Below are positions 17,207 to 64,000 of a stretch of 64,000 nt of DNA, in pieces (within the stretch, counting starts at the first letter, position 1; each line of letters opens with the position of its first letter). Source of the DNA: Paraphysomonas bandaiensis. Its lineage: Eukaryota; Protista; Chrysophyceae. Below the pieces are notes generated by a model, which searched no databases, had not been told where the DNA came from, and saw only the letters and a list, made by a program, of their open reading frames with translations. The stretch lies in the NCBI GenBank assembly GCA_965644295.1, contig CBFFRP010000071.1, positions 62,001 to 126,000 of the forward strand, in the 5' to 3' direction. A program made the position numbers and the translations under genes.

Positions 17207-20200
17207 CTAGAAATATATTCCGTCATATTCATCAATCGTTTGCATTTCATCTTCTTCAATACTGTTCCGCATAATACCAATAAGTAACAACAACAAGGTA
17301 AGTTGCATCATACCTTATCGTAGTGCTCGTAGTACTTCGGCGATGTTCTATGTGCCTATTCTGCGATGGGTTAGAAGACGGGTGATCGTCGTGTACCTTT
17401 TTCAATACTTCTGGTACTTTCTGTGCATTGGAGACACATGTTATCTGCGCTATACGAATGCTTATGCTATACGTACCCTTAGCGTGTTCACCCTGGATTC
17501 GGAGTTAGACCTTGGTATGTTCGAAAGATTCGATCGGAGGTGTGCCAGGAAAGGGCTTGTTTCCACATTTTTAGATTGGTGACAACTATCTTCTTCCTCC
17601 TCTGCCCCATGGTTGGAGAGGTCTAAAGCCGAGTGGTACCTTCTTTCGTACAATGTGACGCGAGTCAGACTTTGCAACAACTCCATCACCGCGTCACAGT
17701 CATTTACATAATTCTTAGCTTCTGTATATTTTTTCCCCACCACAACACTATAGCACTTCACTGGATTTCGACTATTCTTCGAAGTTGCTTCCAGTCGATT
17801 CGCGGTCTCAAACATAGCTTCGTCGGTAACATCATCCCCAACAGTGAGGACAAAGTCAACGTAGTTGCCCATAGACTTAAGAAGGGAAAGGATGTGAGTA
17901 AGGAATAGACCTTTAGACAGCCCTTCTGGACGAATCTCGATGTATCCATCGTCAATACCTCCTCCTCTTATGATCTCCAGGGGCTGGGATGATATGATCT
18001 CTGTCAAATGCTCCTCCAGCTCCTTGCTTTGCATGAAACCGAATTCAGGGTCTGCGTCACGAAATTGCCATATTAGCGCACTTCCCTTTTGTTCAATGTA
18101 CGCGCCATGGGTACGTTGAGTGTATATATCCATAACTCTTCGCACAGCGTCCATCCAACTTGTGTCGTCGACAGATATCATCGTCTGCCACTTCTGCCGG
18201 TGGCCAGTGAGTACACTATGTTTCGGCAATCTGAAATAGCATCCATGCTCAGCAGCTAGTCCCAGTCCCTCAATCTCGACAAAGAACTCCTGCATCGAAC
18301 AAATATCCTTACCAGAAATAACAAACACGTGATTGCGAGAGTCCATACACAAGTCTTCCAGCATCTCTACTAGCTCTACGGAAGGCCCACCGCGGGTTGC
18401 ATGTCCAGTAGCAACCGCGTAAGCCTCGCAATTATCAAGCACATCCACCAACGTCCCTCCCCAATCCAAGAGGATCAAACGCTGTCTGGAGTTAGAGTAT
18501 GCCTTGGACATCTTCACAACATCAAGGGGACTAAATCCAGCCTTCAAACCAGAAACACGGTAATTGATTCCAAGACCGAGAGTGGAGTTATTGCAGTTGT
18601 CTACACTTTTTTCTACCTGCTTGAGATCTTGAAGAACTGTCTCAGCCCATTTAACAGTGGTAATACGGTTACAGAACTCGAGACTGCGACGAAAGCGAGA
18701 GTCGTGTTCGGTGGCTCCCATTGTTAGGGCACGTTTCAGAGCAGCTTTTACCTAAATATATAACACTAAGTTACCAATAAGTACATATATATATAAACAC
18801 TATTCCCAGGCAGATAACTACACTTTACATATTGTACTAAATTAGATTAGAATCGAGTCAAACGATAGAAGCCAGACCTCATCTGTTTTCCAAGGATTGA
18901 CAATAAGAGCCCCACGCATCACTCGTGCAGTACTCACGAATTCGCTGATAATCATAACACCTTCCCGAGTGGCAGTACCAGGGCTTTCCGGGAGATTTAC
19001 TGCGATTTCCTCAACAACCCTTCGAGCAATATCACGAGCGAGAGTGTACTCGATGGGAAGACGGTTTAATCCGTCTCTAAAAGGTGAACACAATTAGTAG
19101 TATACCAACTTTAAATTACTACACCACCTTGCAGATAAGACCAAGAGTATATCGGAGACACAAAACAAGGACAGCCGCTGAAATAGCTTCATTTGATTCT
19201 CTTTCCGCTCCTCATAGTACACAAGTCCGGGATATATCTTGTTAATGCGGTTCACTAAACAAGTGACGTCTCTCTGGGTTTGTAGGTAGTCTGATCCTCT
19301 CTCAGGGGCGGTAATACCTATTATTACAAATATCACTCTGTCGATATACCCTGGGTTCTCATTGATGAAATGCTCAATGGTCATCAGCTTAAGAGGGATA
19401 CATTTCAGCCGCTCCAGACGATCAATACCTAACACGCCCAATTACCGAATATTTCATAAAATAATATATTGTATCGTGGTAGTAGACTGGGCAGAATATC
19501 ATACCTGTGATAACTGTCTTTCCATTGAACTTCTTATGCCATGACATGACCTCTGGAACAAAGTCGTCCCTGCCGACCGCGTGAGAGATGTGTCTGTGAT
19601 CTACTCCCACATGCATGCAGGTGATGCATATCTTCCGTCCACCAGTCTCAACAACCAGGTTTCCCGAAGCATCAAACTCATAGTGAGTTCCCAACACACG
19701 GCGACATGTGGTAAGGAAGTGCCGAGCATACTCATAGAGGTGAAACCCCACCTGGTCAGCGCTCAGAACACCCTGCAGAATTTCTTCCCTACACCAAATG
19801 CTCTTCCATATCTCACTTGACGGAAAAGGGGTGTGTAGGAAGATGCCAATACGAGCACGTTGAATACGACGGCGGAGGAATGAAGGCAAAAGCATTAGAT
19901 GAAATCCGTGCACCCAAATGAGATCGCCTTCATGGTATACTTCCACCACCTTCGTGCGGAAGTGGTTGTTGACAGTGGTATATGTAAACCACAAATCTTT
20001 TTCATTTTGATGATTAAGACCATTTGGTCCCACAGCACCATACACATCACAATTATGATGGAGAATAGGCCACAGGTGTTGCTTGCAGAACACATCATAG
20101 AATTTTTTATGGGTATTTCTTCCGAGGAATATGGGAAAGCAGTTAATGCGTCGGAGAACTGCGGCAAGGGGTTCTTCATCTTCCGCTGCGATTTTTTCAG

Positions 20201-22312
20201 TCGTTTTAACTGTACCCACCCAAGATACGCGCAAGCGGGTCTCAAAAGAAAGTATATTCTCATTGTTCCATTCTGCTGTCCAGCACCCTCGTGGATCTTT
20301 CTTTACAAAAACAGGCAAAAAATAGGAAACTACTAGAACACTGTCGCTGGATCGAATGCTGTCGCTCGATTTTCGACTGACATCGGCCATTTTGCGAGCA
20401 CGGATTTCTTTCGCATATGCATGCACATTTATCGCGGTTCTTTGTAGCATATTGGATACGTCACGACAAGGTCCTTCATCTAATATATCTGACGTTGACT
20501 TTGTTGCACTATCAGAATATTCTAGATCAAGTGACCTCAGGAGTCGACCACCACCTTCATAACGAACAAACTTTCCACCGGAAAAAACTAAGTACCTATA
20601 TCGCACTGACAAATAATTCTCCGGTACATATACAGCTGCAGTAAACTGTGATGAGGCAGTGTAAATAGTAAATGAGCTCACCTTCTCTGTTGTACCACCA
20701 TGGAAACTCAGTTGGAGATGTAACCAACGGAACAGCACGATTAATATCATCGCAACCAAGTGACGGAAGATTTCCACTCAGTCTTATTTCTTCTCCATAT
20801 CGGGTATGAGCTCGAACCTATAAAAACGGCAATAAATTTTAGCGTGCAGGCAGTACGCACTTTCACCAAGTGTGGATTAAAGGCGAGAATCTAAATGGAG
20901 AAAACACAGCATATACACTCAGAGATACATAAACAAACTATGGAAGTATACATATAAAGGAACCAAAAGAAAATAAACAAATGTGTTACACACACAATAC
21001 AAAGCATATAGACACTGTATTGGAATGTAACCATTAGCATAGAAGACTAGGTATAAAATCGTACACTACCGAAAAACAAGAGAATAAACATCAAAAAAAG
21101 TATAGTATAAGTATCAGAGTAGAGGAGGGTGTGCAGGGCGTGTATCAGAGTAGAGGAGGGTGTACAGGGCGTGTATGAGAGTAGAGGAGGGTGTACAGGG
21201 CGTGTATCAGAGTAGAGGAGGGTGTGCAGGGGTGTGTATCAGAGTAGAGGAGGGTGTACAGGGGTGTGTATCAGAGTAGAGGAGGGTGTACAGGGCGTGT
21301 ATCAGAGTAGAGGAGGGTGTACAGGGGTGTGTATCAGAGTAGAGGAGGGTGTACAGGGGTGTGTATCAGAGTAGAGGAGGGTGTACAGGGGTGTGTATCA
21401 GAGTAGAGGAGGGTGTACAGGGCGTGTATCAGAGTAGAGGAGGGTGTACAGGGGTGTGTATCAGAGTAGAGGAGGGTGTACAGGGCGTGTATCAGAGTAG
21501 AGGAGGGTGTACAGGGGTGTGTATCAGAGTAGAGGAGGGTGTACAGGGCGTGTATCAGAGTAGAGGAGGGTGTACAGGGGTGTGTATCAGAGTAGAGGAG
21601 GGTGTACAGGGGTGTGTATCAGAGTAGAGGAGGGTGTACAGGGGTGTGTATCAGAGTAGAGGAGGGTGTACAGGGGTGTGTATCAGAGTAGAGGAGGGTG
21701 TACAGGGGTGTGTATCAGAGTAGAGGAGGGTGTACAGGGGTGTGTATCAGAGTAGAGGAGGGTGTACAGGGGCGTGTATCAGAGTAGAGGAGGGTGTACA
21801 GGGGCGTGTATCAGAGTAGAGGAGGGTGTACAGGGGTGTGTATCAGAGTAGAGGAGGGTGTACAGGGCGTGTATCAGAGTAGAGGAGGGTGTACAGGGGT
21901 GTGTATCAGAGTAGAGGAGGGTGTACAGGGGTGTGTATCAGTGTAGAGGAGGGTGTACAGGGGTGTGTATCAGAGTAGAGGAGGGTGTACAGGGGTGTGT
22001 ATCAGAGTAGAGGAGGGTGTACAGGGCGTGTATCAGAGTAGAGGAGGGTGTACAGGGCGTGTATCAGAGTAGAGGAGGGTGTACAGGGGTGTGTATCAGA
22101 GTAGAGGAGGGTGTACAGGGGTGTGTATCAGAGTAGAGGAGGGTGTACAGGGGTGTGTATCAGAGTAGAGGAGGGTGTACAGGGGTGTGTATCAGAGTAG
22201 AGGAGGGTGTACAGGGGTGTGTATCAGAGTAGAGGAGGGTGTACAGGGGTGTGTATCAGAGTAGAGGAGGGTGTACCTTGAATGTGACTTCTATTACTGA
22301 AGATGATGACAT
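17207..22312 (-). CDS. Bifunctional trehalose-6-phosphate synthase/phosphatase with an N-terminal CBM20
   Basis: Exon 1 (22312-22277, MSSSSVIEVTFK) splices to 20817 (VRAHTRYGEEIRLSGNLPSLG, a CBM20 start). GT20 motifs IWVHGFHL, FLHTPFPSSE, GIDRLE, RDGLN, ISEF. HAD motifs LDWGGTL and VGDDVTDE. Ends ...EYDGIYF* at 17207. Confidence 0.9.
21111..22276. repeat. 31/32-bp minisatellite, about 36 copies, filling TPS intron 1
   Basis: Unit gtatcagagtagaggagggtgtacagg(ggt/gc)gt repeated in tandem. Confidence 0.97.
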
Positions 22313-23160: not shown

Positions 23161-25070
23161 ATGGACCCCTCTGATACCCCCCCTCACCCTCTCTCTCTCT
23201 CCATATACAATGACACCGTTGAATGCAGTGATCTCGTGTGTTATCTCTCCTCATCTGATAACACCCCTCACACTCCTTATCACTGGCTAACAAGCCCCCT
23301 CAACCCTCACTCTCTCATCAATCTAACCCTCTCTAATGTCCAGATTACATCAATTGAATTCATATCGTCTCTAGTGTCTCTTAAGTATCTGTCAGTGTCG
23401 TTCAACAGGATACACAGCATCGCCCCTATAAGCACACTAAGAGAGCTACAAGTCATAGATGTCAGTCATAATCGTATTAATGACATATCTCCACTCAGAG
23501 ATATTCCGAATCTAACAGTACTAAGATTACACTATAACTCTATTGAGTCTCTTGAGGCGATCCGCTCGTCCTCAGCTCTCATTGAGTTGTGGGTGGCTAA
23601 AAATCGTTTACAATTAGTTGATTTCTTACATCTTTTACAACTGACTAGTTTGCAACATATTGTTACTGAAGGAAATCCGTTCGAGGCCAAGCCCAAGTAC
23701 ATTGAATTCTTGCTTGCACTTTGTCCAAGTATTTTGACTGTGAATGGTGCTCCTGCCATTAGTTTGCTACCTGTATCAAATCAAAAGCATTGGTATAATC
23801 CAACAGAGTTTCTACGCACGACAGATGGACGTGTAATGCTTACCCAAGCTCGAGCACAGTTGACTGAGTCTCAGAGGGAGTTTTTGAACTCTTTGAAGAG
23901 TACACCACTGCAGGGCGTCTCTGTAGCTGCATCTGTGGACCTGGAAGGGGCAACGCATTGTCGAGGAACGCTGTACAGACGAGATCGAAATAGCATACTT
24001 CAAACAGACTCTGCATCAAGTAGTGGAAATTCCGGCGACGATTCTGTGCTAAGGGCTGTCAGTGAGGGTGGTAAGCCGATAAAGTACTTCAAAGCGAAAA
24101 AGAAAAATACTCCTAAGATGTTCATACAACAAAATACCGAACTTAGAAATACTGACTCTAGCTTACCCCGAGGTGATGCCTCAATTGTCCGCTTCGGAGA
24201 AGGATCAATGGCACCAGTGGCGGTCTGTGTTGAGGAGGACGGAACAGGTTATGCAAGGTAAGTGTTACTTCGCACTCAGTGTCGTCGTATGTATTATAGT
24301 GTAAATACATGTACTTTCGTTCATGATTTGGATTTTCTTCGTTTATGATTTGGGGTATACTCACCAGATGGGCGCGGACTGGTCCTACAGCGTGCTCCTT
24401 CGATAATCAACGGCTCTTTTCTTCCCACAAAAACGGGAGCATTGCCGCCGTTGTAGACCCAAGTGGTAATGGGTCGGTGATGACACCTGCAGGACGATGT
24501 GTACTCAACATCCGTGTGACAAAGGAAGGCCATGTTGCTGAGGAGCTAACGGAGGATGGGACGTTGATTCAAAATCACCACAGGAGAAATATAGAAGCTA
24601 CTGTAGAGGATAAGGAGGACGCCTCAGTGGAGCAGAAATCACAAGAGGGAGACTTGAATAACTCATCAGTGTGGAAGTTCGATGGAATGCGGGTGAGATT
24701 CGTTCCAAGTACTTGGGAGGTACAGTGGAAATATTTTGCGGGATGTCTATGTTAATACAGCTATTTGCTCGATAGGTGTGTGTAGAAGTCACCAATTCTC
24801 GTGTTACTGCGGAGTTTTCGAGCTTGAAAGGAGGCCGCATTGTTACAGGTATATCCAACTAAACGAATCGTAAAGATGTAAGTTTTGTTTCTGTCAGAGC
24901 ATAATGAGCCCTCGAAACCGAGGAAAAGTGGCACAAGTAGTAACAGAAGCAACGTTACCAAGAAAAAAACAGAGCTTCTTTCCTCTGATTCTCATGATAA
25001 TATGAGGGAGGGTTTGCAGTCGGTAATGTCGGCTCTAGACGATATGCTAGCTGGAATGAAAAGCAAATGA
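23161..25070 (+). CDS. Leucine-rich-repeat protein (SDS22-like LRRs plus LRRcap) with a C-terminal beta-rich domain
   Basis: LxxLxLxxNxI repeats, GNPF...YIEFLLALCPSI cap, three introns, stop at 25070. Confidence 0.75.
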
Positions 25071-27366: not shown

Positions 27367-30300
27367 TTAAATCCTTACAGAATCCCATAATACTGTGCTG
27401 GATTCAGGATCCATTGCGCTCGACAGAAACTTTTTGCCGTCAGGGCTCCACTGAACGGACGTCACGGGGCCCATGTGACCCTGAAACGAAGCCAGTAGTG
27501 CCTTTTTCGCAAAACTCCACAGCATTATAATCCCATCGCAATCTCCAGATAGCAATAGCTCGTCATCCACACACCATGACACGGCCTTTACCGCCCGTTT
27601 GTGTTCGCGAAAGGTAAAATATACAGTTGTAGTTTGAATAGAGTTCCATATTGCAACCGTTCCGTCATCAGATGCAGAAGCAATTTTGTCACCAGCTTGA
27701 TTCCAACAGATCGCTGTTACTTTATTCTTATGCTCACTAAACGCTTTGGCCTTCTTGTCAGCCACATTCCATACTCTCACAGTGTTACTTAGGGAACTGG
27801 CAGCAATACTCTTACCGTCTGGGCTCCATTGGACATCGCTTATGAAGTAATCGTTAAACTTCTTAAGGGTGAACAGCTGCTGGCGTGATTGCATGTTCCA
27901 GACGATTACTGAGGAGTCTTTAGATCCTGTTGCCATATACTCATCATCCGGACTCCAACAGATGCTGTTGATATCCATCGAATGGCCACCGTGCAAAGTA
28001 GAACTCAATGCAGTCGTTGTCGATTGCCCATTGTTTCCATTTAATGATGATGGCACACTCCACACGACAAGATTCCCGTCGCGACATCCTGCCGCCAGGA
28101 ATGACCCTGTGGAATTCCAACCCAGTGCTAATACTGGCTTGTCGTGATTATGGCTGATAGCAGAGCCATTTTGAAAAGTATCCCATATATGCACGTAGCC
28201 ATCCTCACCAGCAGCTGCGATGTGACGCCCATTAGGGCACCATCGCACACAGTGCACGGCTTGCAACACTCTGTCATCTCTCTCAGTCGGATGTGCAATG
28301 TACGCCATGCCCTTCAGCCATGAAGTCTTTAAGAAGTTTCCATCTTGAGTGACAGGCAATTGCGTTATGTATTCCAAGAAAGCTGATCTTGCCACAGAGT
28401 GCAAAGGCTCTGCCGTAACAGTCGTTGGAATCATTAATTCTGGTGAGCCAGAAATACGATCTGAAGATCGTCGAAGCCACTTCAAATAGTGGTCAATCTT
28501 CGTGATGAGTTCCTCGTCACCTGAACCTTCGCATTGACAATCTTCTTCTTTGAGTTGACCAAGTATATGATCCAATAGAATTACAATGCGATGTCCTTGT
28601 CCACACTTCATTGATGCACAGATATTTTCAAAATTACACAGTTCATCCACTGCTCGATAAATTTGACCTGCATATGTAAAGTGACCAGCAGCTTCTTGGC
28701 ATCTCCTCAGGTTCACAACAGCGGATTGTATCCAGCAGGAAGTGCCCAGCAATAGAACTGGGTGAGATGATAACTTCTTTACTTCTCGCTGATGGACATT
28801 AACATCATTGCCGTAATACTGTCCCATAACTTTGTGAAGTGCCACTTTATTTACATTCTTCTCTCCAGCAAATCGTTCCTCTGCAAGTTGCTGAAACTGC
28901 TCATGGCGCCAAGACACACAACCGTGAGGTCGCTCAGATATTAGGTCCCCTAGAGTAACTCTTAGTCTTGCCCACACATGACAGGGTAGTCGAAACAGAC
29001 CCGGAAAGTCGTGAGTACACACAGCATAAAGGAGCTCGTCATCCATTGATAACATATCCTCCATTTCCAAGTCATCCACACCATGACATGAAAAGGTTAT
29101 GAGACTGAGAGCAATACGGGTCATTACCTCGCCACACTTTTGTTCAATATCATCCAGCACCTGAGAAAATATTCCACTCAAAGTTGTACCCAATTCAGGA
29201 GTAGAAGTATCACTGTTCCAATTTTGTACTACACGGGCTACGAGGCTAGCGTACAGTGCAGTAGGTTCTTCCGCTATTCGATTCATTACCATGTCCCATT
29301 GACTATCAGTGAGAGTCCGACCTTTGGATGCCAAAATCTTTTCAACAATAGTGTGTGCCTCGCATTGTTGATCCTCGGTCTTATCATCCTGAGAATCATC
29401 TGATGCTTTTGTAGGTGAATTCGCAACCTCAGGCAACTCAGCGCCACTTTCACGCGATTTCGTTGGCGAACTGACAGAAGTGTTAGATGGACCCATAGAG
29501 AGATCAGGAATATTTATTCTCCGAACTTTTTCATCACGCAATAAATTAGTAACACCCAAATCATCATCAGTACAGGTTGAAACAATAATGCGAGTGTCAG
29601 AGTGTACCACAATATCTTGAAGAAAGGATACTCCCCCAGTTATTTCGTCTACGGCATCCAGAACAAGCACAACCGCATGGGCACCAAGCAAATAGTTCAA
29701 AGCTTCCCAGTCTGTTGTACGTTGACCACATCTATTAGGCGGGGTTGCTGGACCCATCAGATACTCCATCTGAAGGAGTAGACTGTGGACAAGGACATCA
29801 CCCCGCGAACTACTATCACTGGTTCCACAAAAACGAACTATCACAGGCCTAGCTTTATATACTTTTTTCTTAACAGACTTACTGGAATTGCTAGCGGTCG
29901 ACATCTCTATTTCTTTGTCATATATCATTTGAGCAAGTCTAGCCATTAAAGCTGATTTTCCGACCCCATGATCTCCCGTCAGTACCATGGAGATGCAGTT
30001 ATATCTACCTGTGGACCTGTTTTCATCATCCTTACCTTTAATAACTGCTCTCGCCCTGGCATCTCGAGGATCTAACACAATTTTATTAGGCGTCTGTAGC
30101 ATGTCTAAGGATTGACGAAGAATTTCTTCGCGCCCTGCGAATGCTAGACACATATCATGCGCCAGCTTACAGTGATGTAAAAACTCCTCCACTGCTGCTC
30201 CGGGAAATCCCATACCACATCCAGAACTCTCCCAATTTTGTCGTAGGTGTATAATCGCTGAAAGCTCTTCAGTAAGAGCATCCAATGTGCGCTTCTCCCA

Positions 30301-31632
30301 AGTGGACATATAATTCAAGTAGGTACTGTCATGATCGGTCATAGAGGCGTACGAGATATTACTGTGCACATGAATCCGTCCAACATCATACTTCGCAATC
30401 CGACGAGTCATCCAGTCTCGGAGGTCGCAAATATGCTTCTGCACTTCTGTGTCATCAGTGGAATCACAGTAGTTCTTGTCAGTGCAAGGGCTGACGAAAT
30501 TTCGTCTGATCCATAGAACGCGATTCACATCAATGTCATTCTTAAGGGCATACTTAACCTCCCACTCCGATATACTCCTCCCCACTGCAACATCACGACA
30601 TACCGACTTATCAAAGCGTACACCATTGAATAACGTTCTCAGTGGTTGCATAATGTCCCAATACGGGTCATTGTCAACTGTCTCAAGACTTTTGAGTGTG
30701 TATTGAACGGGATTAGCGTTAGTGTCAAGAGAGTACCAATTCTGAGCCAAAGTAACCAAAGCAGGGTCATCGCATTTCTCAATTATCGATTCAAAAGTAC
30801 GCCGTTCGATTGATCGTGGTAGAGGACGATAGCCATACTTGTCGTTTTGCAGTGATATGAAAAACAGACCTCGAGATTCGTCTCGGCACCGCTGGATCTC
30901 TCGCTTGCATTCATCCCACGTTCTGTGGTCAAGCATGTGCTTGTCTAGAACACCCCATCTGGTATAAAAAGAGTAAGAACTGAAATCATTATACGTTCTA
31001 AACAACAAACCTCATATCTACAAAAGTGACCTCAATGTCATGCGGATATGAAAGCTGGCGCAGCTGCGGCAAGATTCTGTCTAACAATATGTTTCTCTCG
31101 CACCTTGTGTCCTAATTACAACAGGTGGTCATTGAAATTGTAACATGTAACCTATAAAACGTACTGTGAAGGTACTCGACACAAAAACTAGCATCTGCCA
31201 CTGACGAAATCTCCATTGATTGACAGTAGTTGCAGTCGTCTGACTAAATTCTTCAATTTCTCCGTGCATAAAATTGCCTGATATAACCTCTCGACGAAGA
31301 CCGATTTTACTCTCTTCAAGTGCAATCAATTTATCCTTTAAGGCAGCATACTTGAATTTATTTTGAGGCGAATTCGATCCATTAACACGCCTGCGAGATA
31401 AGCTACTACTGCATCGCTTCAATGACACAGCCGGCATCTTAACATCACTGTTAGTGCCTCCTGACAGCCCTAAAGGGGACCTCCTGCCGTTTGATACACT
31501 CTTCGGTGACTTGACAGTGTTGGGAAGAGTGTGTACTGTGGCTGTGTGTCTCAGATGACGACTGGAGGAAGAGGTATTGAGGTAGGGCCTCTGTGTGTTT
31601 GCGCGAGGTAGAGTGGAGGCTGATCTTGACAT
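27367..31632 (-). CDS. NWD1/2-like STAND NTPase: DUF4062-like domain + NACHT-type P-loop + WD40 repeats
   Basis: VFVSSTFT...ERN motif, Walker A GDHGVGKS, Walker B VVLVLDAVDE, about 6-7 C-terminal WD40 repeats, two short 5' introns. Confidence 0.88.
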
Positions 31633-48454: not shown

Positions 48455-49174
48455 CAATTTAATTCCTCACAACATTTGATTGGGTCGGATCCTCAAAACT
48501 TGACAAATGAATTCGAGACAGAAGAAGTGGACATTATTCATAGACACTTATATCATAGATTACAGTTGAATAATATATACTGTAAAAACAATCAGAGTGT
48601 TGTCAATACGCAACATACATGCATATGTCGTCAGGTTGTGTTCATATTGCAGGTAATGCATACATGTGAGTTGAGTGATACATCATGCTATCTATAACTA
48701 TTAATTCTCAATGAAATACAATAATATGACGATAGATTAGTGCTCAGCACCTCTGAATTAGTCTACCAGCATCATCCCTCCATTAGCATCACTGTGAGCA
48801 GACATACTCAGACAAACCATGATCATAAGGGCATCATGATGGACGACAGCGACAGGTGGTTGAAAAGATTAAGACACTCACAACACTGAACTGATGAGAG
48901 ATCAAAGTCACGAGAATGATAATGAAACAAAGCTGAGAGTGTGTTTGATTTGATCCTCTGTGAGTGTGTGTTATGGGCAGAATGAAAAATAGTGTGTCTC
49001 TTCAAGATACGATGTGTGGGTTGTTTGTGTGTAGGTATCTTTTTTTGTTTCTCATAGTAGAGAATGAAGAATGAAGTGATAACAAGTGAGCCATGTATGT
49101 GTATTTGACACTATTATCATAGTCACTCTTCACTTCTGTTCACTTCTGATCACTTCTATATACTTATATATAAG

Positions 49175-52100
49175 ATGCCTCGTCTTGTTACAGCTGCTGA
49201 TATAGGTGACTTCAATGGTGTGAGGAGGTGTGTGGAGAGGGGTGATGATATCAATACACGAGATAAGGTAACCATACACACATACCTGCATACATACACA
49301 TACATACACATACAGTGATATGAGGGCTCATATGATATTATTGTGTTGTAGAGTGGTGATACAGCTCTTCACTATGCTGTCATTAGAGGTCGCAGAGATA
49401 TATCTGCATATCTCATAAAAGAGGGAGCAGAGATAAATATACAAGACAATGTAAGCAACCCCTCTATACATACATACACATACAGTGTTATATATACATA
49501 CAGTGATATGAGGGCTCATATGATAGTATTTTTATTGTTAATAGGAGGGTCGTACAGCTCTTCACAGGGCTGTCTCTAATGGTGACAGAGATGTATCTGC
49601 ATATCTTATAAGAGAGGGAGCAGATATAAATATACAAGACAAAGTAAGTAACCCCTCTATACATACACATACAGTGTTATATACACATACAGTGATATGA
49701 GGGCTCATATGATATTATTGTTTTATAGAGTGGTGATAGAGCTCTTCACTATGCTGCCTCTAAAGGTCACAGAGATATTTCTGCATATCTCATAAAAGGG
49801 AAAGCAAATATTAACATACAAAACAAAGTAAGTAACCCCTCTATACATACATACATACATACATACATACATACATACATACAGTGATATGAGGGCTCAT
49901 ATGATAGTATTTTTATTGTTAATAGGAGGGTCGTACAGCTCTTCACAGGGCTGTCTCTAATGGTGACAGAGATATATCTGCATATCTTATAAGAGAGGGA
50001 GCAGATATAAATATACAAGACAATGTAAGTAACCCCTCTATTATACACACACATGCATACATACATACGTACACTGTTATGAGGGCTCATATGATGTTAT
50101 TGTTATTGTTTATAGAGAGGTTGGACAGCTCTTCACTGGGCTGCTCGTTATGGTTACAGAGATATATCTGAATATCTCAGTAGAAGAGGAGCAGATACAA
50201 CTGTACGAACTATTGTAAGTAACCCTTCTAAACATGAATGCATACAGTGTTATGAGGGCTCATATGGTATAATTGTTATTGTTTTATAGAGGGGTTGGAC
50301 AGCTCTTCATTATGCTGCCTTCAAAGGTCACATAGATATATGTCTATATCTTATAAGAGCAGGAGCAAGTATTGACATAAAAGACAATGTAAGTAACCCC
50401 TCTATACATACATACATACATACATACATACATACATACAGTGATATGAGGGCTCATATGATAGTATTTTTATTGTTTATAGGAGGGTCGTACAGCTCTT
50501 CACAGGGCTGTCTCTAATGGTGACATAGATATATCTGAATATCTTATAAAGGAGGGAGCAGATATAAATATACGAGACAATGTAAGTAACCCCTCTATTA
50601 TGCACACAAATACATGCATACATACATACATACGTACACTGTTATGAGGGCTCATATGATGTTATTGTTATTGTTTATAGGAGGGTTGGGCAGCTCTTCA
50701 CTGGGCTGCCTACAGAGGTCACATAGATATATCTGAATATCTTATAAGCGAGGGAGCAGATATAAATATACGAGACAATGTAAGTAACCCTTCTAAACAT
50801 GAATGCATACAGTGTTATGAGGGCTCATATGGTACTATTGATTTATAGGAGGATCGTACAGCTTTTCACTATGCTGCTCGTTATGGTCACATAGATATAT
50901 CTGAATATCTTATAAGCGAGGGAGCAGATATAAATATACGAGACAAAGTAAGTAACCCCTCTATACATACATACATACATACATACATACATACATACAT
51001 ACATACATACATACATACATACATACATACATACATACATACATACATACATACATACATACATACATACATACATACATACATACATACATACATACAT
51101 ACATACATACATACATACATACATACATACATACATACATACATACATACATACATACATACATACATACATACATACATACATACATACATACATACAT
51201 ACATACATACATACATACATACATACTCCCATACATACATACATACATACATACATACATACATACATACATACATACATACATACATACATACATACAT
51301 ACATACATACATACATACATACATACATACATACATACATACATACATACATACATACATACATACATACATACATACATACATGTACATACATACATAC
51401 ATACATACATACATACATACATACATACATACATACATACATACATACATACATACATACATACATACATACATACATACATACATACATACATACATAC
51501 ATACATACATACATACATACGTACACTGTTATAAGATCTCATATATAAGTATGCATATTATATGTACTTCTCTGACTCATTATGTTAAAGACGATATGAA
51601 TATGCGGCGATGTACTGCGTAACTTCTTTTATTTTATGATACTTATTATTTTGCAGGATGGAAAGACTCCTGTTGATGTGGCAGAAGATGATGCGATGCG
51701 TGATATTATCACAAATGCACATGTTAGTATGTATACCGTATGTTTCATCTTATTCGTAGAACCAGAAGTATAGGAGTCATATGTGTATTGTATAGGCTGA
51801 GAGGCAGAGACAGCAAAAGGAGGAAGCTGCCACTGCAGAGGTATGTGTGTGATGGTGATGTAGTTATATGGTATGATATGTTTGATAGTATTGGTATTAT
51901 GGTTGGTGGATATGAGTATGTAATATGTTACGCTTTAATTTCAGTTTGTGTGTGTTTATGACTTTTATGACACTGCCTGTTTATTTGTGTCCGTATGCAG
52001 AAAAGAAAAATATTTGGAAATTTACTTCCAGATACCTGGGGATTGATATTATATGATGAAAGCGATATCCCAAACCCTTCATTAGTGGAGCTGGAGTGTA

Positions 52101-52657
52101 ATAGCTGGGAGTTTGTCATGGCTTCCACAATCTTCGGAAGTAATGACTTTGACTCCAAGGCAGACATTGTGCGTATTGAGCGTGTTCAAAACGTAGAACT
52201 CTATAGACATTACGATTCCAAGCGCAAAGAAGTCGCTAGTAAGAATGGGGGCAAAGCGAATGAGACCCTTCTAAAGCATGGAACACGCTATACTTCTCCT
52301 GAGGTGATCTGGAATAGTGGGCGAAATAACGTATATGGTTTTGATTTCCGCTATTGCAACGATTATACCCTCTATGGCAAAGGGTCATACTTTACAGACG
52401 ATACCAATTATGCACATGACTTTTCGTATGATTGCCGGAACTCATATAGTGAAAGACAGATATTTTTGGCGTTGGTTGCTCAAGGTAGTATTGAACAGAG
52501 AAAGATCTCAGATAGTAGAATAAAAGCTCCAAAAGAAGGATGCCAGTCTGTTCGTGGGCCTATTCGGGGTTCTATTCAAGGACTAATTGTTTATGAGCAT
52601 CATCAAAGCTACCCTGCATACCTTGTAACTTACAGAATGCGCAACAGACTAGATTAA
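49175..52657 (+). CDS. Ankyrin-repeat PARP-family ADP-ribosyltransferase; 13 exons, one ankyrin repeat per 99-nt exon
   Basis: Exons 49175-49267, 49352-49450, 49545-49643, 49729-49827, 49926-50024, 50116-50214, 50290-50388, 50483-50581, 50681-50779, 50849-50947, 51657-51722, 51796-51840 and 52001-52657, all with phase-0 GT-AG introns. TALHxA ankyrin motif; PARP motifs LKHGT, YGKGSYF and IVYEHHQSYPAYLVTY. Confidence 0.93.
50964..51520. repeat. (TACA)n expansion inside intron 10 of the ankyrin-PARP gene
   Basis: About 550-bp array at the position where the sibling introns have only a few TACA units. Confidence 0.97.
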
Positions 52658-58404: not shown

Positions 58405-61400
58405 TCATTGAAATCTCATACGGGTCATAATACGATCTAAATCTTCTGTACTCAGGTTTTGGATTTTATTGTACTTCACCACAAATCTTGTTTTCGGTTG
58501 TGACTTAGTAGCAACTAATAGATCTTCGATTCCTGACATCCTACTCATTGCCAACGTATACCTCACTGACAAAACGGATAAACTACGTTCACTGGGCAAG
58601 TCTGTCCCTGCTTTTATGGCTGTTGTTTCGGGACGGCGCTCTGACGGACGTGAATCCCATGATTCCTGGTCATACTTAATAAGTGCTTCCTCCAGGCAGG
58701 AGGTGTTGATGGTCAGTATATTTCGTCTGACCACACTAGGTCCTCCAGTTGATACTTTGTTCGTTTTATTGTCATCATCCTCACTCTGCTCCTTGCCTAA
58801 TTTCACAATAAATGCTGTAATGAAGAATGACGTGATGACATTCATCATCAGCAGTACACCTACACAGTACCACGTGATAAAAAACGGACGGGCCGTAGAC
58901 CGAGAGGTTACTGCAGAAAGACCGCCCGTAATGACATCCCATCCACTGACGTGTAAACAGACCACCAAAATTACAAAGCTGTTTCCCATGTCATTGAAAT
59001 TCAGCTCGAAGAAGTCGCGATCACCAAATTCTGTGCCTAACAGCTTATTATACTGATCCTCATTGGGGTCCTTATTAATTAGACCACCAAATAATGACAT
59101 GCCAAGTGCAGCAAAGGCAAACATAATCACAAAAAATGGGACCGCAATATTGACCACGCTTAATAACGCCGTTCTGATTGAGGCGAACATGAAGTGAACA
59201 TCAAGGGCAGGAAACAAATATCCAACATTTCTCAAAAAGAAACAGCCTCGAAACCAAAGCAATATCCTGCAGAAAAGCATCGTGAAACAGGATAACGCAA
59301 CGAATTTTTCCAAACCTATGTGCTCCTACAAAGAATGACACATGCTGTGAGGTGGCAACGTGCGCGCATCCACCAAACAAAACAAGAACAACTGCAACCA
59401 AAATGTCCAATCGGTGCCATGAAAACGACCAAACTCGCCTTGGGCCTACTATTCCAAGCTTCAATATGACATCAACGACCAGTAATATCCCGACAACAGC
59501 GAAGATGTGTGATTCGCCTTTATGATCAAAAAAATTCTTTCTGACCCCTCGTAATATTATGCCAGTACATATCAAGGTAAGTACTGATAAATCAAACACG
59601 ATTCTGTAAAACTTAGACAAAAACAATTTATACAGGAGTAGAAATGACTTATGTCGGACCACAAGTGGTATTACTGCATTCAAATAGTGGCCCTCAACCT
59701 ACACGAAATAAGAAAAGGTGTAAAGGGACATCAAAACTAACCTCTTGTATGACAGTAACTCGTAGAAGATCCAAAATCATCAAAAACTCTTCGAAGTAGA
59801 CCCTACCGTCACCATTGATATCCAACGCTCTGAGCAACAAAGCACGCTCACGATTCGATGGTACATGCTTTCGAAAACTTGAGTAATGCTCATAAAGTTC
59901 CTCTAGAACTTCGTTCACTTGTTTATATGTGAGGTACCCGACACGATGCACGTCAAGTGATTGATAAGCAAGGGTAAGATTCTTCACTCGAAAAGCAGTG
60001 CTGTCAAATTCAACACTTTGCCTTCCCGACTCAAAAGCTGCAAATACGACCACCAGGATAGCTTTCAAGTAAAGGAAAGAGCCACATGTTATAACGACAA
60101 AGAAATATATCATTGTCCATCTTCTGTCGTTGTATCCAGGTATTAACTGGTCTGGAAAACTGGAGGATGTTATTGCAACAAACATGGTCCATATACTCTC
60201 CCCCAACGAACCAAAGTACTGCTCGTTTGAATCGGGAGTGGTTGCATCATCCTTGAATATGACTCGCCCTATAGTTCCTCCAATCAACACTAAAATAAGA
60301 AGTGATAGTATCATTATAAAAAACCTAAGCAATCATATTCAATTAGGTCAACACTTCACATATAGGTTTACGTACAAAGGCAAAGTCTTAATCAGTACAA
60401 AAAGGCCATTCATGTAGATTACATTGAACCACAGCATATATAACAATGCTGTCCATTGAGTTGCCCATACACAAAACCAATCAATGTTGGTATTCCCCCC
60501 CATACTCAAAGAAAGCACCTGCAAAAGAATGACCGCCATGTTGAAAGATATCATAAGTGGGAGTGCAACAGATTGAAACCATTGGGAAATGATCTCGATT
60601 AGAGTCGGATCAGATCTCTGTATACCAGATGCATGAGGCTGCGGCTGTGTACCAATACGAGAAACGTCAGTTTTTTCCGCCGCTTTAGATTCCGAAGATC
60701 TTTTTTCTTGAATCCCATATTTTGATTGAGTACCTTTTTTTGTGTCTGATGCATGTTTCAAGGAGTCACACCTGTCAACACCCCCAACTGCCTCATCTAC
60801 AACTGGACTTTTCGAACTACTTAGAGAAGTTGAGAGTGTTCTATTACTTCGTATCAATTTTTCCTCATACGACTTGTAACCGAACTCCAATATTAATCCC
60901 CAGGTAATTACGCACGTTAATATTATAGTTATCACACTCGCTAGAGATCTGTCCAATCTAGGAATATTCGAATTGGGATACAATGCACCGTCGTTCCAAT
61001 CAGATGAGGCACCACTGTGGTAAGTCCAATACGGTCTCGTAACAAACGGCAGCACGCACAGGAGCCACGTTGCCAGTCTAAATACTCGAGAATACTGCAT
61101 TGATATCAACACACTTCATTGCTACGAGTGAATCTATTACAAACCTTTTTGCTTTCTCTGTAACAAAGGTAGTTAAATCGCGAGTGAAAGTTAATTCTTT
61201 CTTGACCATTCTTGGCGCACTGCATGAGGGCCGCTGCGTACTCCACCACAGACACACTTTCCCGCTTCTGCTCCCACAATGACTGGTAACAAAGAGATAA
61301 CATACTTTACGCCAGAAGAATACATGGCACAAAACTCACCTGTAGTAATCGCGGTAAAACGCTGCTGGTCTCAGTATTTCTAGCTGCGGGTGGGATGTCG

Positions 61401-64000
61401 AAAGCTGGAATGTCAGTCGCAGACATTGATAACTGCGAGATAGTTGTAGCGTGAGTATTATGATTAGAATTATCATCTTGAAAAGAAATTTCTCGTTGAA
61501 GCAATTTTGTAGACTTCCTGTCTATTAACCGTTCAGACGGCCGCAAGGGTTGTGTAAATGTAGATCGATATATATCCAGCCCACCTCCAGATTCAAAAGT
61601 CACTGGTACAATGACACTACTTCTTCCAGATGACGCTCGATTATCTTTGGAATCAGCAAGGCGTTCAGGAGTTGACTCAACCCCTGAAATCGTTATATCG
61701 CTGCCACTATCCTCCGACTGTGGCACCTCATCCAAAAGTTTCGCAGTGTACATAGCTCGCGATATATCCGCTGCCTCTAACTGAGGGGCATTCATCCACT
61801 GATACACGTCATCGCAATAGAATGACTGGTGCGTAGACAATGGTTCCTCCTCAGTAGTTGGAGGGGGTCTTGCAGCCTTGGATATATCGACCACTTCACC
61901 TTCAACAAGACTCTCTGACGACGACTCAGGCACGACATAATCAGAAGCAGTAGTGGATATCTCATCTCTCCCGACACTATCCTCTTTTATGCACGCCTTT
62001 GTACCACAACTTCTTGAAAGCCAAAAGACCATAAATCCGTTAAGAAGTGAGGCGGTAAAAAGGTTAAGAAGCAAGAGTACGCCAATCACATACCACATCA
62101 CAAAATATAACCTTGAAGAAGTGCCGTTAGTCACTGATTCTATGCCTTCCGAGGTGATGTCCATGTTATTGACCATAAGGAGCGTAAAGAGTGTACCCAT
62201 TGCAGATAAGATATCATTGAAATTTAAAACATAATAGTTCTTTTCACCGAAAGATGTTTCTGATAGTGTCGTATACGTACCATTACCGGATGCCTGAATG
62301 AACCCACCAAATGCCTGCGGTGCGTAGTTACCAAAGAAAATCAACAATGTCACTAAGACTACTAACCTTAACTCCAACCCCAGCAAATACTAACCCAATG
62401 GTCAGTAATAACAGCAGCAACAGAATAACATCCAGAGCACCTAGCATAATATAAACGCATAAAACAGTATTTTTAATGACTGCATACCGACTACGCAACG
62501 ACGTATTCCAAATTTAAGAGCACGCCGATAGGGTCTCATAGAATCCAACAGAAAGATGTTGCGTGGAAACAAAATCACGCGAACAGCTGCAGCATATATA
62601 AAAGTGGTGCGTGAAAAATCAACCAGGACCACTCCAGCCTGAGTAATGGTTACAATAATTCATGCACAACTGTGTAAAGTGTATACAAAGCACAATCTAA
62701 TGCCGATACGCCAATATGATGATTGCATTACACATACCATGACAGTAGTTAGAGCCATGTCTTGAAAATATCTATAACTCGCCAGAAATCTAACGCCCAC
62801 AGTGTGAAAGGGTGCGGCAAAAAACATCACATCATACCTTCTTATTCCCTTGGCCCACATTCTCAATATAGTTTCCAGTACACAAAACACAGTGATAACT
62901 ACCGCTAGGGCAAAATCACATGCACCGCACACCGCAGCGAAACAGAGGCACGTCACAATGAAGTCATGTGAAAACTCAAATTCTTTGCAGTTAATCTGCG
63001 CACTTAGCCATTGTACAGAAGCAAATGCCGGCATTGCGAGCTGTCCTAAACCAGATTGCACGGAGTCCAAACGCGGTTTCGACTTCAGAAGATACTCATA
63101 TCGCGAGGCAAGCCATTGTAGGCGTATATCATTGTCGAAAAAAATGACAATATCGTTAGAATCCTGAGCGACTTGTGGCATGGAAACATCAGGAGAGTTT
63201 GACAAAACAACACTACCCCTGCCCGGAATTACAGATGGAAGTAGCATTGGGTGGTCATGAGAAAAACTCAGTAAGTCTTGAACATTTTCATTGTGATATG
63301 TATTGACATCAAACACACCTTCCGATATGCCCCGATTATCACCGGAGAAAGATACATCTGCTACATCTTCACAAATACTTTCGAGAACAGAACCCCTATC
63401 ATAGATAGATCGCATTTCAGGTGATGCATTCAATTCCATATCTATTGGTTTGCTACAACTGAGCACTGGAAGTGATTTAAGAAACTTGGCACAGTCCGTC
63501 TCAAGAACGACAGTAAGAAACAACTGGAAGAATAACTCACGTGGCATCCCAGAGTCGTAAATGTTCTTCACAGCATCAGACCGACGGTGTACAGCAGTCT
63601 TTCTCAAAGTAGATACAGAGGAGCGAATTCCAAAAGCATAACTGTACGAAGTCGCCATCGCTTCTCCGTGTAAACGAAGCAAAGGCTGAATATCCAACAG
63701 CGGTAGAGGAGAGGTGTATTCCTCAAACCAGTCGAAATTTGGACGAAATTTCTTCAATATCTTTGCCTTTGACCACGGGTCTTCATCCTGTTGTCTCATA
63801 TGTTCCTGTGTGTCTTCCATAGGCTTCGATTTGACTTTGGAAGGTGCAGAGTCTGCTGAAGAAGCTTGTGTAGGCCTATAATCTCGTTGTACGCGTAATG
63901 TCTCCAATTGAGCCGCTCTGTAGTGAATATTCATAACAGCCAAAAGTATGTCAGTATCTTCGTTGAACTCGGAATCTCTTGCCTCCAATCCACTTTCCGG
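58405..64000 (-). CDS. Two-pore-channel-like cation channel, apparently two TPC units in one polypeptide (5' end outside the window)
   Basis: Three pore domains are visible (LLMVNNMD, AITSSSFPD, CLHVSGWD), with paired EF-hands DVHRVGYLTYKQ and DINGDGRVYFEE, joined by in-frame GT-AG introns. Stop at 58405. Confidence 0.82.

Follow-up and report, generated by a model that had tools for sequence, protein, structure and literature searches.

The window analysed in this study, a stretch of 64,000 nucleotides of Paraphysomonas bandaiensis DNA, carries at positions 49175-52657 of its + strand a gene of 13 exons and 583 codons (coding length 1752 nt). Its exons follow one another in the order N-cap, nine ankyrin exons of 99 nt in phase 0, C-cap, a 15-codon linker, and a PARP catalytic exon (Table 1). 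The frame is open in 13 of 13 exons, and GT..AG ends are found at 12 of 12 introns. An earlier note, made from the sequence alone, had described nine consecutive single-repeat exons of this length and phase, lying between caps and upstream of a PARP domain, and pattern scan, exon translations, and Pfam agree on this arrangement. Scanning for AG followed by a 99-nt open frame and GTAAG or GTAAC returned exactly nine exons, each encoding one 33-residue ankyrin repeat. A1 scores above the cut-off of Pfam Ank (PF00023; 36.4 bits against 21.1, E 5e-9), and the remaining eight exons, with a mutual DNA identity of 66-98%, have the framework TALH..A..G..D....L...GA in common. A5 is the repeat that diverges most, its nearest exon (80% identity) being located at a different locus, C508. 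The N-cap is 61-63% identical to those of two ankyrin-PARP paralogues, and a similar upstream motif is common to all. As also remarked in the note, open reading frames miss the array, with none of at least 120 aa covering it on the + strand; an exact look-up of a 220-aa ORF product gave no match. From the N-cap to the PARP domain the exons encode ankyrin, cap, and linker only, and a NACHT or NB-ARC NTPase is absent. All sequence and fold searches were run exon by exon, not on the joined 583-residue protein.

Table 1. Exons and introns of the ankyrin-PARP gene, in positions of the window.
Feature	Position	Strand	Evidence or remark
Exon 1, ATG + ankyrin N-cap (31 codons)	49175..49267	+	93-nt frame, GT donor at 49268
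Ankyrin exon A1 (99 nt, phase 0)	49352..49450	+	Pfam Ank; A1-A2 RNA junction
Ankyrin exon A2	49545..49643	+	pattern scan; 98% identity to A4
Ankyrin exon A3	49729..49827	+	pattern scan; A3-A4-A5 joined in RNA
Ankyrin exon A4	49926..50024	+	pattern scan; RNA
Ankyrin exon A5	50116..50214	+	pattern scan; A5-A6-A7 joined in RNA
Ankyrin exon A6	50290..50388	+	pattern scan; RNA
Ankyrin exon A7	50483..50581	+	pattern scan; RNA; 95% identity to A4
Ankyrin exon A8	50681..50779	+	pattern scan; RNA joint ambiguous with A7
Ankyrin exon A9	50849..50947	+	pattern scan; RNA contig into C-cap
C-cap exon (22 codons)	51657..51722	+	at least 31 genome copies, 77-92% identity
Linker exon (15 codons, charged, Glu/Gln/Arg/Ala-rich)	51796..51840	+	RNA splicing to PARP exon
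PARP catalytic exon (218 codons + TAA)	52001..52657	+	Pfam PF00644; His93, Tyr130, Tyr137, Gly194 (exon numbering)
Introns 1-9 (69-99 nt)	49268..50848	+	duplicated along with exons
Intron 10 (709 nt)	50948..51656	+	(ATAC)n microsatellite of ~560 nt, 50963-51525; excision shown by A9-C-cap RNA contig

The repeated unit of the array comprises exon and intron, with periods of ~193 and 381 according to Tandem Repeats Finder. In introns 1-9 the 5' end (GTAAGTAACCCC) is conserved, the ATAC microsatellite varies, and a 16-nt core (TATGAGGGCTCATATG), which sits ~21 nt 5' of the 3' splice site, is invariant. The mean identity of the first 17 nt of these introns is 94%, compared with 78% for the exons. 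Of 169 units from other loci, 112 have the 5' motif and 70 the core GAGGGCTCA. A genome search with the exon+intron unit, which the earlier note had proposed, returned at least 242 matches on ~20 contigs; 161 further 99-nt phase-0 single-repeat exons were recovered at other loci. The gene is not single-copy. The genome contains three ankyrin-PARP genes with nine (this gene), four, and one internal repeats, which split at dS ~0.25: paralogue C457 has an N-cap, four repeats, a C-cap, a linker, and PARP, and paralogue C235 has an N-cap, one repeat, a C-cap, and PARP. Three more PARP paralogues are without ankyrin. Other arrays are followed by a RING (zf-C3HC4_3) or a Pkinase domain, by an unknown one of ~280 aa, or by a neighbouring ankyrin-only gene, a partial list obtained from the 1.5-kb flanks of 30 C-cap matches. 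The ~280-aa domain, present in five family members, has no sequence match in Pfam or PDB. The differing repeat numbers, together with the varied downstream domains, show that cassettes have been gained and lost in evolution and that the binder is coupled to exchangeable effectors.

Within this gene, residues vary at position 1 (S/E/R), 3 (D/R/W), 8 (Y/R/W), and 11-12 (IR, SN, SK, RY, FK, YR), exactly as the earlier note had listed them. The framework, which had been called near-constant, is so only roughly: 9 of the 33 positions are invariant, but nine further positions (10, 14, 15, 19, 23, 24, 27, 31, and 33) vary too. Across the family, the hypervariable positions are 8, 12, 3, 1, 33, and 11. 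The variable residues coincide with the ankyrin binding face, as had been supposed, and the per-codon comparison of exons finds nonsynonymous change in excess there. The DARPin-randomised positions, chosen a priori, have a dN/dS of 2.83 (bootstrap 2.3-3.4) over 85 family exons, versus 0.64 for the other positions; within this gene, the values are 2.16 and 1.07. These are pairwise Nei-Gojobori estimates and not a site model, and 8% of random six-codon sets attain as high a value. Because the pairs are non-independent, short, paralogous, and possibly gene-converting, a dN/dS above 1 is indicative of diversifying selection at the ligand-binding positions rather than a formal test of it. A2, A4, and A7, three of the nine repeats, have identical surface residues, and the diversity of the array is below the potential of nine cassettes.

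The last exon encodes a PARP domain (Pfam PF00644; 53.3 bits, cut-off 26.7, E 3e-14), which is the only domain found there by the Pfam scan. In a sequence search of PDB, the catalytic exon matched PARP12 (E 2e-16), PARP14/15 (~1e-13), and tankyrase (~4e-10), so that the E-values place PARP12/14/15 ahead of tankyrase by 3-6 orders of magnitude. The AlphaFold2 model of this exon has a pLDDT of 91, and its best Foldseek matches are tankyrase catalytic domains (probability 1.00, TM 0.70-0.74). The NAD+-binding residues are present: among 30 aligned relatives, His93-Gly94 and Tyr137 are invariant and Tyr130 occurs in at least 90%. Poly-ADP-ribose-forming PARPs have a Glu in the third position of the triad (His-Tyr-Glu), where the strand begins that leads up to the conserved Tyr-Pro (YP) motif. 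Here this position, assigned by its fixed spacing to the YP motif and aligning with an Ile of PARP12, is Gly194; it is Gly or Ala in 30 of 30 clade members, and the poly-ADP-ribose-type Glu is absent. Because His and Tyr are kept but Gly replaces Glu, the domain is predicted to be a mono-ADP-ribosyltransferase at best, and its activity is a prediction because a Gly at this position occurs in none of the PARP structures matched. With a dN/dS of 0.12-0.16 against the non-ankyrin copies, the PARP exon is under purifying selection, and the values of 0.45-0.58 among the three ankyrin-PARPs (dS 0.23-0.30) suggest that constraint is rather relaxed in them.

Tankyrases (TNKS1/2), the classical ankyrin-PARPs, recruit substrates through ankyrin clusters, and the N-terminal ankyrin array of the present protein could likewise recruit substrates to a C-terminal PARP domain that has no PARP1-type regulatory domain. 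The best fold matches (TM ~0.72) are a further likeness. Unlike tankyrase, however, the protein has no SAM domain between array and PARP, where only the 22-residue C-cap and 15-residue linker exons lie, and its triad is His-Tyr-Gly instead of His-Tyr-Glu; a tankyrase identity was rejected on these two grounds and on the better E-values for PARP12/14/15. An HMM of the nine repeats was run on the top 150 PARP relatives, a set below which the tankyrases rank, and detected ankyrin in none of them; the nearest relatives bear macro, WWE, or NYN domains, or none. Considering that ankyrin is missing from these 150 relatives elsewhere, the fusion seems to be young and lineage-specific, and considering that the sequence is nearer to PARP12/14/15, it seems to be independent of tankyrase. 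PARP12, PARP14, and PARP15, mono-ADP-ribosyltransferases which are vertebrate and interferon-linked, are the closest solved catalytic domains by sequence and, like the present one, have the His and Tyr and no catalytic Glu. They differ in their Ile or Leu at the third triad position, where Gly or Ala is found here, and in their targeting domains, which are CCCH zinc fingers with WWE, or macro, instead of an ankyrin cassette array.

Spliced poly-A RNA of the gene is present in marine metatranscriptomes. Read-derived contigs were compared with positions 49100-50960, and the junctions among the C-cap, linker, and PARP exons come from two JGI transcript contigs; all this RNA evidence consists of assembled contigs, not raw or long reads. 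The junctions seen in the array are A1-A2, A3-A4-A5, A5-A6-A7, A8 (or A7)-A9, and A9-C-cap. A poly-A contig of run X8 joins A3-A4-A5, and an X8 contig passes directly from A9 to the opening 30 letters of the C-cap exon. Contigs connecting A5, A6, and A7 come from runs X10 and X12. Run X10 also provides a contig spanning 49163-49266 (exon 1) and a joint from 50779 to 50849, that is, A8-A9, which is ambiguous with A7, the last 30 nt being identical in A7 and A8. JGI contig L073 retains intron 11 and has linker and PARP exon spliced together in frame, and in L074, the transcript of a paralogue, the whole C-cap-linker-PARP chain is spliced. The sole contig over the exon 1/A1 junction has three extra letters which read as an in-frame TAG, and therefore at least one transcript form would stop after codon 31.

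We consider it fairly probable that the gene, which is transcribed, is intact and encodes a binder-guided mono-ADP-ribosyltransferase, diversified in the germline, in a family devoted to conflict-driven recognition. The product would be a cytosolic 583-residue protein in which eleven stacked ankyrin repeats (the two caps and nine internal ones) are tethered by the short charged linker to a PARP12/14/15-like His-Tyr-Gly domain. The concave face of the stack would bind a target protein, and the enzyme domain would then mono-ADP-ribosylate the target or itself. Diversity of the array would be encoded in the germline, with the exon+intron unit as a recombination module that may be duplicated, deleted, or exchanged by unequal crossing-over or gene conversion, and with selection favouring amino-acid change at binding-face positions 1, 3, 8, 11, 12, and 33. 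The gene is one of three young ankyrin-PARP paralogues among at least 31 arrays with other effectors or none. The family pattern suggests conflict-driven recognition, be it anti-viral, anti-bacterial, or of self and non-self, and a putative immune role of the ankyrin-PARP is plausible.

Ankyrin-enzyme fusions are common, and ankyrin stacks recruit fixed cellular substrates in tankyrase and the ASB proteins. The gene may encode an ordinary housekeeping adaptor-enzyme with such a substrate, and the variation of its repeats may reflect neutral drift and concerted evolution without an arms race. The dN/dS of ~1 off the surface positions within this gene is compatible with relaxed constraint, and no difference is seen in the eight pieces covered by X5, a DNA run that bears the label of another organism. 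Nevertheless, we regard a housekeeping role as unlikely, considering that change is concentrated at binding-face codons named a priori, that repeat number differs among paralogues which separated so recently, that the at least 31 arrays are accompanied by several unrelated effector domains, and that ankyrin is missing from all 150 of the closest PARP relatives elsewhere. It is also conceivable, albeit very unlikely, that the locus is a decaying or non-productive copy which is transcribed but yields no functional protein. The in-frame TAG, the intron retained in L073, and the relaxed constraint on the catalytic exon among ankyrin-PARPs would fit such decay, whereas the open exons and regular introns, the intact NAD-binding His, Gly, and two Tyr, the confidently folded model, the spliced poly-A RNA, and a catalytic dN/dS below 1 argue against it.

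Many isoforms can arise from one gene, as in DSCAM, and programmed combinatorial diversification, in which the nine cassettes are skipped, reordered, or somatically rearranged into many receptor isoforms, would be favoured by cassettes of a length and phase that keep any subset in frame. The conserved intron ends and the invariant 16-nt core could serve regulation, and exon-per-repeat LRR arrays of Ectocarpus are reported to be alternatively spliced (PMC11378527). One X10 contig does link A2 to A5, with one letter between the two sides. However, A2 and A4 have 49 identical bases in common, which together with A4's own last base account for the joint, and since a k-mer assembly may jump from A2 into the end of A4, we take it to be an assembly ambiguity and not a skip. 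An A7-to-A9 skip was likewise rejected, as it rests on the 30 letters identical in A7 and A8. In the assembled contigs, every unambiguous junction is between neighbouring exons, and splicing-based mixing of exons is unsupported. The earlier proposal that any exon can be gained, lost, reordered, or skipped in frame (up to 2^9 subsets) therefore survives for gain and loss in evolution, as seen from the 9, 4, and 1 repeats, but not for skipping and reordering as a library of 2^9, and we regard combinatorial diversification as highly improbable. That the cassettes are put to use during the life of an individual, through regulated choice of exons or through somatic recombination guided by the intron core, appears more improbable still; if this did occur, single cells or clones would differ in the ankyrin surface that they join to an ADP-ribosylating effector, and a protist would have an equivalent of DSCAM- or VLR-type receptor diversification.

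A binder gene of this kind has close precedents in brown algae, where exon-per-repeat shuffling has been described for LRR and TPR genes (PMC3341825, PMC11378527). According to Zambounis et al. 2012 (PMC3341825) and Teng et al. 2024 (PMC11378527), the LRR-ROCO and NB-ARC-TPR genes of Ectocarpus and other brown algae may encode immune receptors. Like these, the present family belongs to a stramenopile, has one repeat per exon, with exons of fixed length and symmetric phase, forms a multigene family in which repeat number differs, and bears signs of diversifying selection on the ligand-binding face. The repeat, however, is ankyrin (99 nt, phase 0), where the brown-algal genes have LRR (72 nt) or TPR (126 nt), a ROC-COR or NB-ARC is lacking, and the effector is a PARP, a RING, or a kinase. 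Alternative splicing has been reported for ROCO genes, whereas it is not seen here in assembled RNA contigs. Fungal NLRs with ANK, TPR, or WD repeats, among them the Podospora NWD/HET genes, also have hypervariable ankyrin repeats (Dyrka et al. 2014, PMC4986451). In both cases the repeats are highly conserved internally and vary in number, effector domains are assorted in combinations, and the inner helix and beta-hairpin of the concave face bear sites with signs of positive selection. Unlike the present arrays, which are N-terminal, have one exon per repeat, and lack an NTPase, the repeats of fungal NLRs lie within single exons, C-terminal to a NACHT or NB-ARC NTPase.

The gene belongs to a binder family that is large and diversifies fast, and families of this kind are known from fungi and brown algae; the design has these precedents, and the PARP fusion is the new part. 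In the open-access literature we found no description of protist ankyrin exon cassettes or of ankyrin-PARP12-like fusions. A design of constant scaffold, hypervariable face, and swappable effector, which fungal NLRs, brown-algal LRR/TPR genes, and the artificial DARPins exemplify, appears to have evolved again in a heterotrophic marine stramenopile, here with ankyrin repeats one per exon and no NTPase switch. Its PARP member connects the design to ADP-ribosylation, a chemistry which animals and bacteria alike employ against viruses. Should foreign proteins be what the array guides the enzyme to, the two would amount to a simple immune effector of binder plus modifier, in a protist group with little-known immunity.

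The family also brings together natural ankyrin binders on a defined framework, and offers a tractable case of exon+intron units driving repeat turnover. Like DARPins, its arrays have a constant framework with N- and C-caps, whereas they are natural and germline-encoded. Of the six positions randomised in DARPins, four (exon positions 1, 3, 11, and 12) rank, along with position 33, among the most variable of the family. DARPin position 33 (exon position 31) varies only moderately here, and helix position 8, which is not randomised in DARPins, is the most variable of all.

The ankyrin-PARP gene is a eukaryotic gene of 13 exons with a coding length of 1752 nt (583 residues), and each of its 12 introns starts with GT and ends with AG. 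A pattern scan for AG followed by a 99-nt open frame and GTAAG or GTAAC gave exactly nine matches, A1 to A9, each encoding a 33-residue ankyrin repeat, and the array unit was also detected by Tandem Repeats Finder with periods of ~193 and ~381. In searches run, like all others here, on single exons, A1 matches the Pfam ankyrin repeat (E 5e-9), and the last exon matches the Pfam PARP catalytic domain (E 3e-14, 53 bits versus a cut-off of 26.7). Pattern scan, translation and Pfam thus bear out the architecture described in the earlier note, nine 99-nt ankyrin exons between caps and upstream of a PARP domain, and its list of variable residues proved exact when checked against the exon translations.

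Features of the ankyrin-PARP gene and of other genes in the window
Feature	Position	Strand	Length	Remark
Ankyrin-PARP gene	49175-52657	+
Exon 1, N-cap	49175-49267	+	93 nt	begins with ATG; ankyrin N-cap coding
Introns 1-9	49268-50848
Exon A1	starts 49352	+	99 nt	pattern scan
Exon A2	starts 49545	+	99 nt	pattern scan
Exon A3	starts 49729	+	99 nt	pattern scan
Exon A4	starts 49926	+	99 nt	pattern scan
Exon A5	starts 50116	+	99 nt	pattern scan
Exon A6	starts 50290	+	99 nt	pattern scan
Exon A7	starts 50483	+	99 nt	pattern scan
Exon A8	starts 50681	+	99 nt	pattern scan
Exon A9	starts 50849	+	99 nt	pattern scan
(ATAC)n microsatellite	50963-51525		~560 nt	inside intron 10, between A9 and C-cap
C-cap exon	51657-51722	+	66 nt	downstream of array
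Linker exon	51796-51840	+	45 nt	charged; downstream of C-cap
PARP exon	52001-52657	+	657 nt	last exon; TAA stop; Pfam PARP
Trehalose gene frames	17462-20777	-		adjacent frames
LRR protein frame	23161-24261	+		LRR_4, E 1.5e-19
NLR-like gene	27367-31008	-	1213 residues	single open frame, 18 kb upstream of ankyrin-PARP
Ion-transport frames	58405-62386	-		two frames with ion-transport domains

Among 85 distinct family exons, entropy was highest at positions 8, 12, 3, 1, 33 and 11, all on the beta-turn and first helix of an ankyrin repeat; exon positions 1, 3, 11, 12, 31 and 33 are the counterparts of the six that DARPins randomise. An excess of nonsynonymous change at surface positions, which the earlier note had set as a test, was found at this a-priori set: pairwise Nei-Gojobori dN/dS was 2.83 (bootstrap over exons 2.3-3.4), as compared to 0.64 (0.57-0.72) at the other 27 codons, in non-independent pairs of short sequences with possible gene conversion, and random six-codon sets match the observed value in 8% of trials. 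In this gene alone, the values were 2.16 at the DARPin positions and 1.07 elsewhere. A2, A4 and A7 are 93-98% identical and have their surface residues in common, which argues that part of the array is a very recent duplication that has yet to diversify. The nearest relative of most repeats lies within the gene; that of A5 is an exon at another locus, and A6 is equally near to exons at other loci.

Conservation is higher at the intron ends than in the exons, with 94% mean identity over the first 17 nt versus 78%. All nine introns of the array carry the 16-nt core TATGAGGGCTCATATG unchanged, ~21 nt upstream of the 3' splice site. This core is an imperfect palindrome with partial conservation in the family; of 169 units at other loci, 112 have the intron 5' motif and 70 the core GAGGGCTCA. 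CTCAT within the core is a plausible branch-point sequence, and the pattern is most simply read as splicing signals kept by purifying selection next to exons under diversifying selection. The core and intron ends may also have a regulatory or recombination role.

The earlier note had proposed looking for paralogues and their effector domains, and a search of the genome (62.6 Mb, 669 contigs) uncovered both. The exon-intron unit has at least 242 matches on ~20 contigs at 72-93% identity, intron included, and the C-cap exon has at least 31 matches. In the 1.5 kb downstream of C-cap matches, PARP is found at this gene and two further ankyrin-PARPs with shorter arrays, C457 (N-cap, four repeats, C-cap, linker and PARP) and C235 (N-cap, one repeat, C-cap and PARP); a C-terminal RING finger (zf-C3HC4_3) at C438, C241, C41 and C436; and a protein kinase at C483, confirmed by Pfam, with the same downstream sequence open at C640 and C365. 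A shared domain of ~280 residues, with no match in Pfam or PDB sequence searches, follows arrays at C138, C618 (twice), C263 and C430. Thus, one type of predicted binding array is joined with several unrelated output domains. The shared open frame measures ~240-280 residues after five arrays (L062, L068, L069, L071, L072), longer if the loci are uncut, and is a candidate effector of the family. At C186, ankyrin-only genes follow one another directly with no effector; this tandem cluster (C186:139000-149200; L052-L057, L059) holds at least seven genes with near-identical C-caps, and in at least five a new N-cap exon lies ~300 nt past the C-cap.

The genome contains six close copies of the catalytic exon. 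Those at C321, C620 and C330 are without ankyrin, and their homology begins at residue 9 of this gene's last exon, which marks the fusion point. Relative to these copies the catalytic exon is under purifying selection (dN/dS 0.12-0.16, dS ~1.5); in comparisons among the three ankyrin-PARPs, constraint on it is looser (dN/dS 0.45-0.58, dS 0.23-0.30). Since the ankyrin-PARPs split (dS ~0.25), array lengths have become 9, 4 and 1.

Tankyrase is a known ankyrin-PARP, with a SAM domain and a catalytic Glu among its defining features. An AlphaFold2 model of the catalytic exon (mean pLDDT 91, built on 30 relatives) retrieved PARP catalytic domains in Foldseek with probability 1.00 and TM 0.70-0.74, tankyrase structures at the top. 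Among solved structures, PARP12 (E 2e-16) has the nearest catalytic domain by sequence, followed by PARP14 and PARP15 (~1e-13) and, lower down, tankyrases (~4e-10). Only the C-cap and a 15-residue linker lie between array and catalytic exon, so this protein lacks the SAM domain of tankyrase, and instead of the catalytic Glu it has Gly194. We therefore rejected a tankyrase identity. All 30 aligned relatives have His93-Gly94 and Tyr137, and nearly all have Tyr130; position 194, placed by spacing to the Tyr-Pro motif at the site of the Ile of PARP12, is Gly or Ala in every member of the clade. Because poly-ADP-ribose formers have Glu at this site, the domain is predicted to be of mono-ADP-ribosyltransferase type at best. 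Among 1.84 billion representative proteins, the catalytic exon has 2256 matches (E up to 0.001). The partner domains in the ten best are exclusively macro, WWE and NYN, several having no second domain, and an HMM of the nine repeats found no ankyrin in the best 150 of the 2256, which argues for a young, lineage-specific fusion.

Part of the window is contained in twenty public runs, poly-A marine metatranscriptomes included. When assembled contigs were compared with 49100-50960, junctions A1-A2 (run X10), A3-A4-A5 (X8), A5-A6-A7 and A8 (or A7)-A9 (both X10 and X12) and A9-C-cap (X8, at a loose end) showed no mismatch. For the linker and PARP junctions we used JGI transcript contigs: L073 retains intron 11 and shows in-frame splicing from the linker to the PARP exon, and in the paralogue transcript L074 an ankyrin exon end and an unspliced intron are followed by C-cap, linker and PARP spliced in frame. 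The suggestion that in-frame skipping generates a library of up to 2^9 isoforms found no support in the available contigs. An A2-to-A5 joint occurs in one X10 contig, with a single letter between its sides, but a 31-mer assembly can cross from A2 into the end of A4 because the 49 bases ahead of their last, differing base are the same in both. An A7-to-A9 joint was likewise rejected as exon skipping, as A7 and A8 share the 30 letters on which it rests. At the exon 1/A1 junction (49266-49352), the sole spanning RNA contig (X10, 603 nt, no mismatches) carries three letters beyond the GT..AG model. They give an in-frame TAG past codon 31, so either the intron is GT..TG or the strain differs here. 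L073 (sample 3300017004) is 100% identical to the window over C-cap, intron 11 and linker and changes to the C457 sequence for ~30 residues inside the PARP exon, reflecting either chimeric assembly or gene conversion in that strain. The DNA run X5, whose label names another organism, has contigs that agree fully with the window in all eight listed pieces, which are too short for repeat counts.

The data are best explained by a fast-evolving binder-plus-enzyme encoded in the germline. In this model, the ankyrin face would select a target, which the PARP-like domain would mono-ADP-ribosylate as its putative activity, and arrays would grow, shrink and exchange through the exon-intron unit as their module. 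An immune or other conflict role of the cassette family is a reasonable inference, because diversification is focused on the surface and effectors are swapped. In principle, this agrees with accounts of hypervariable ANK, TPR and WD repeats in fungal NLRs (PMC4986451) and of brown-algal LRR and TPR genes built one repeat per exon (PMC3341825, PMC11378527). In contrast to these, the family described here packages ankyrin repeats one per exon, has no NTPase, and uses PARP, RING and kinase effectors.

Intron 10 (709 nt) is largely (ATAC)n microsatellite, and long microsatellites likewise lie just past the last recognised ankyrin exon in other family members (L013, L023, L025). Two or three copies of the linker exon and its flanks occur at L044 (C438), L049 (C640), L069 (C618) and L072 (C263), so the linker, too, behaves like a cassette whose copy number varies. 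Elsewhere in the window, the NLR-like gene has an NWD1-like winged helix (E 1e-8) and a WD40 propeller (E 1e-51), and a weak AAA_16 match points to an NTPase of STAND type. The trehalose-phosphatase (E 1e-51) and glycosyltransferase family 20 (trehalose-6-phosphate synthase, E 4.5e-66) frames probably form one TPS-TPP gene, and the ion-transport frames are probably exons of one cation channel gene.
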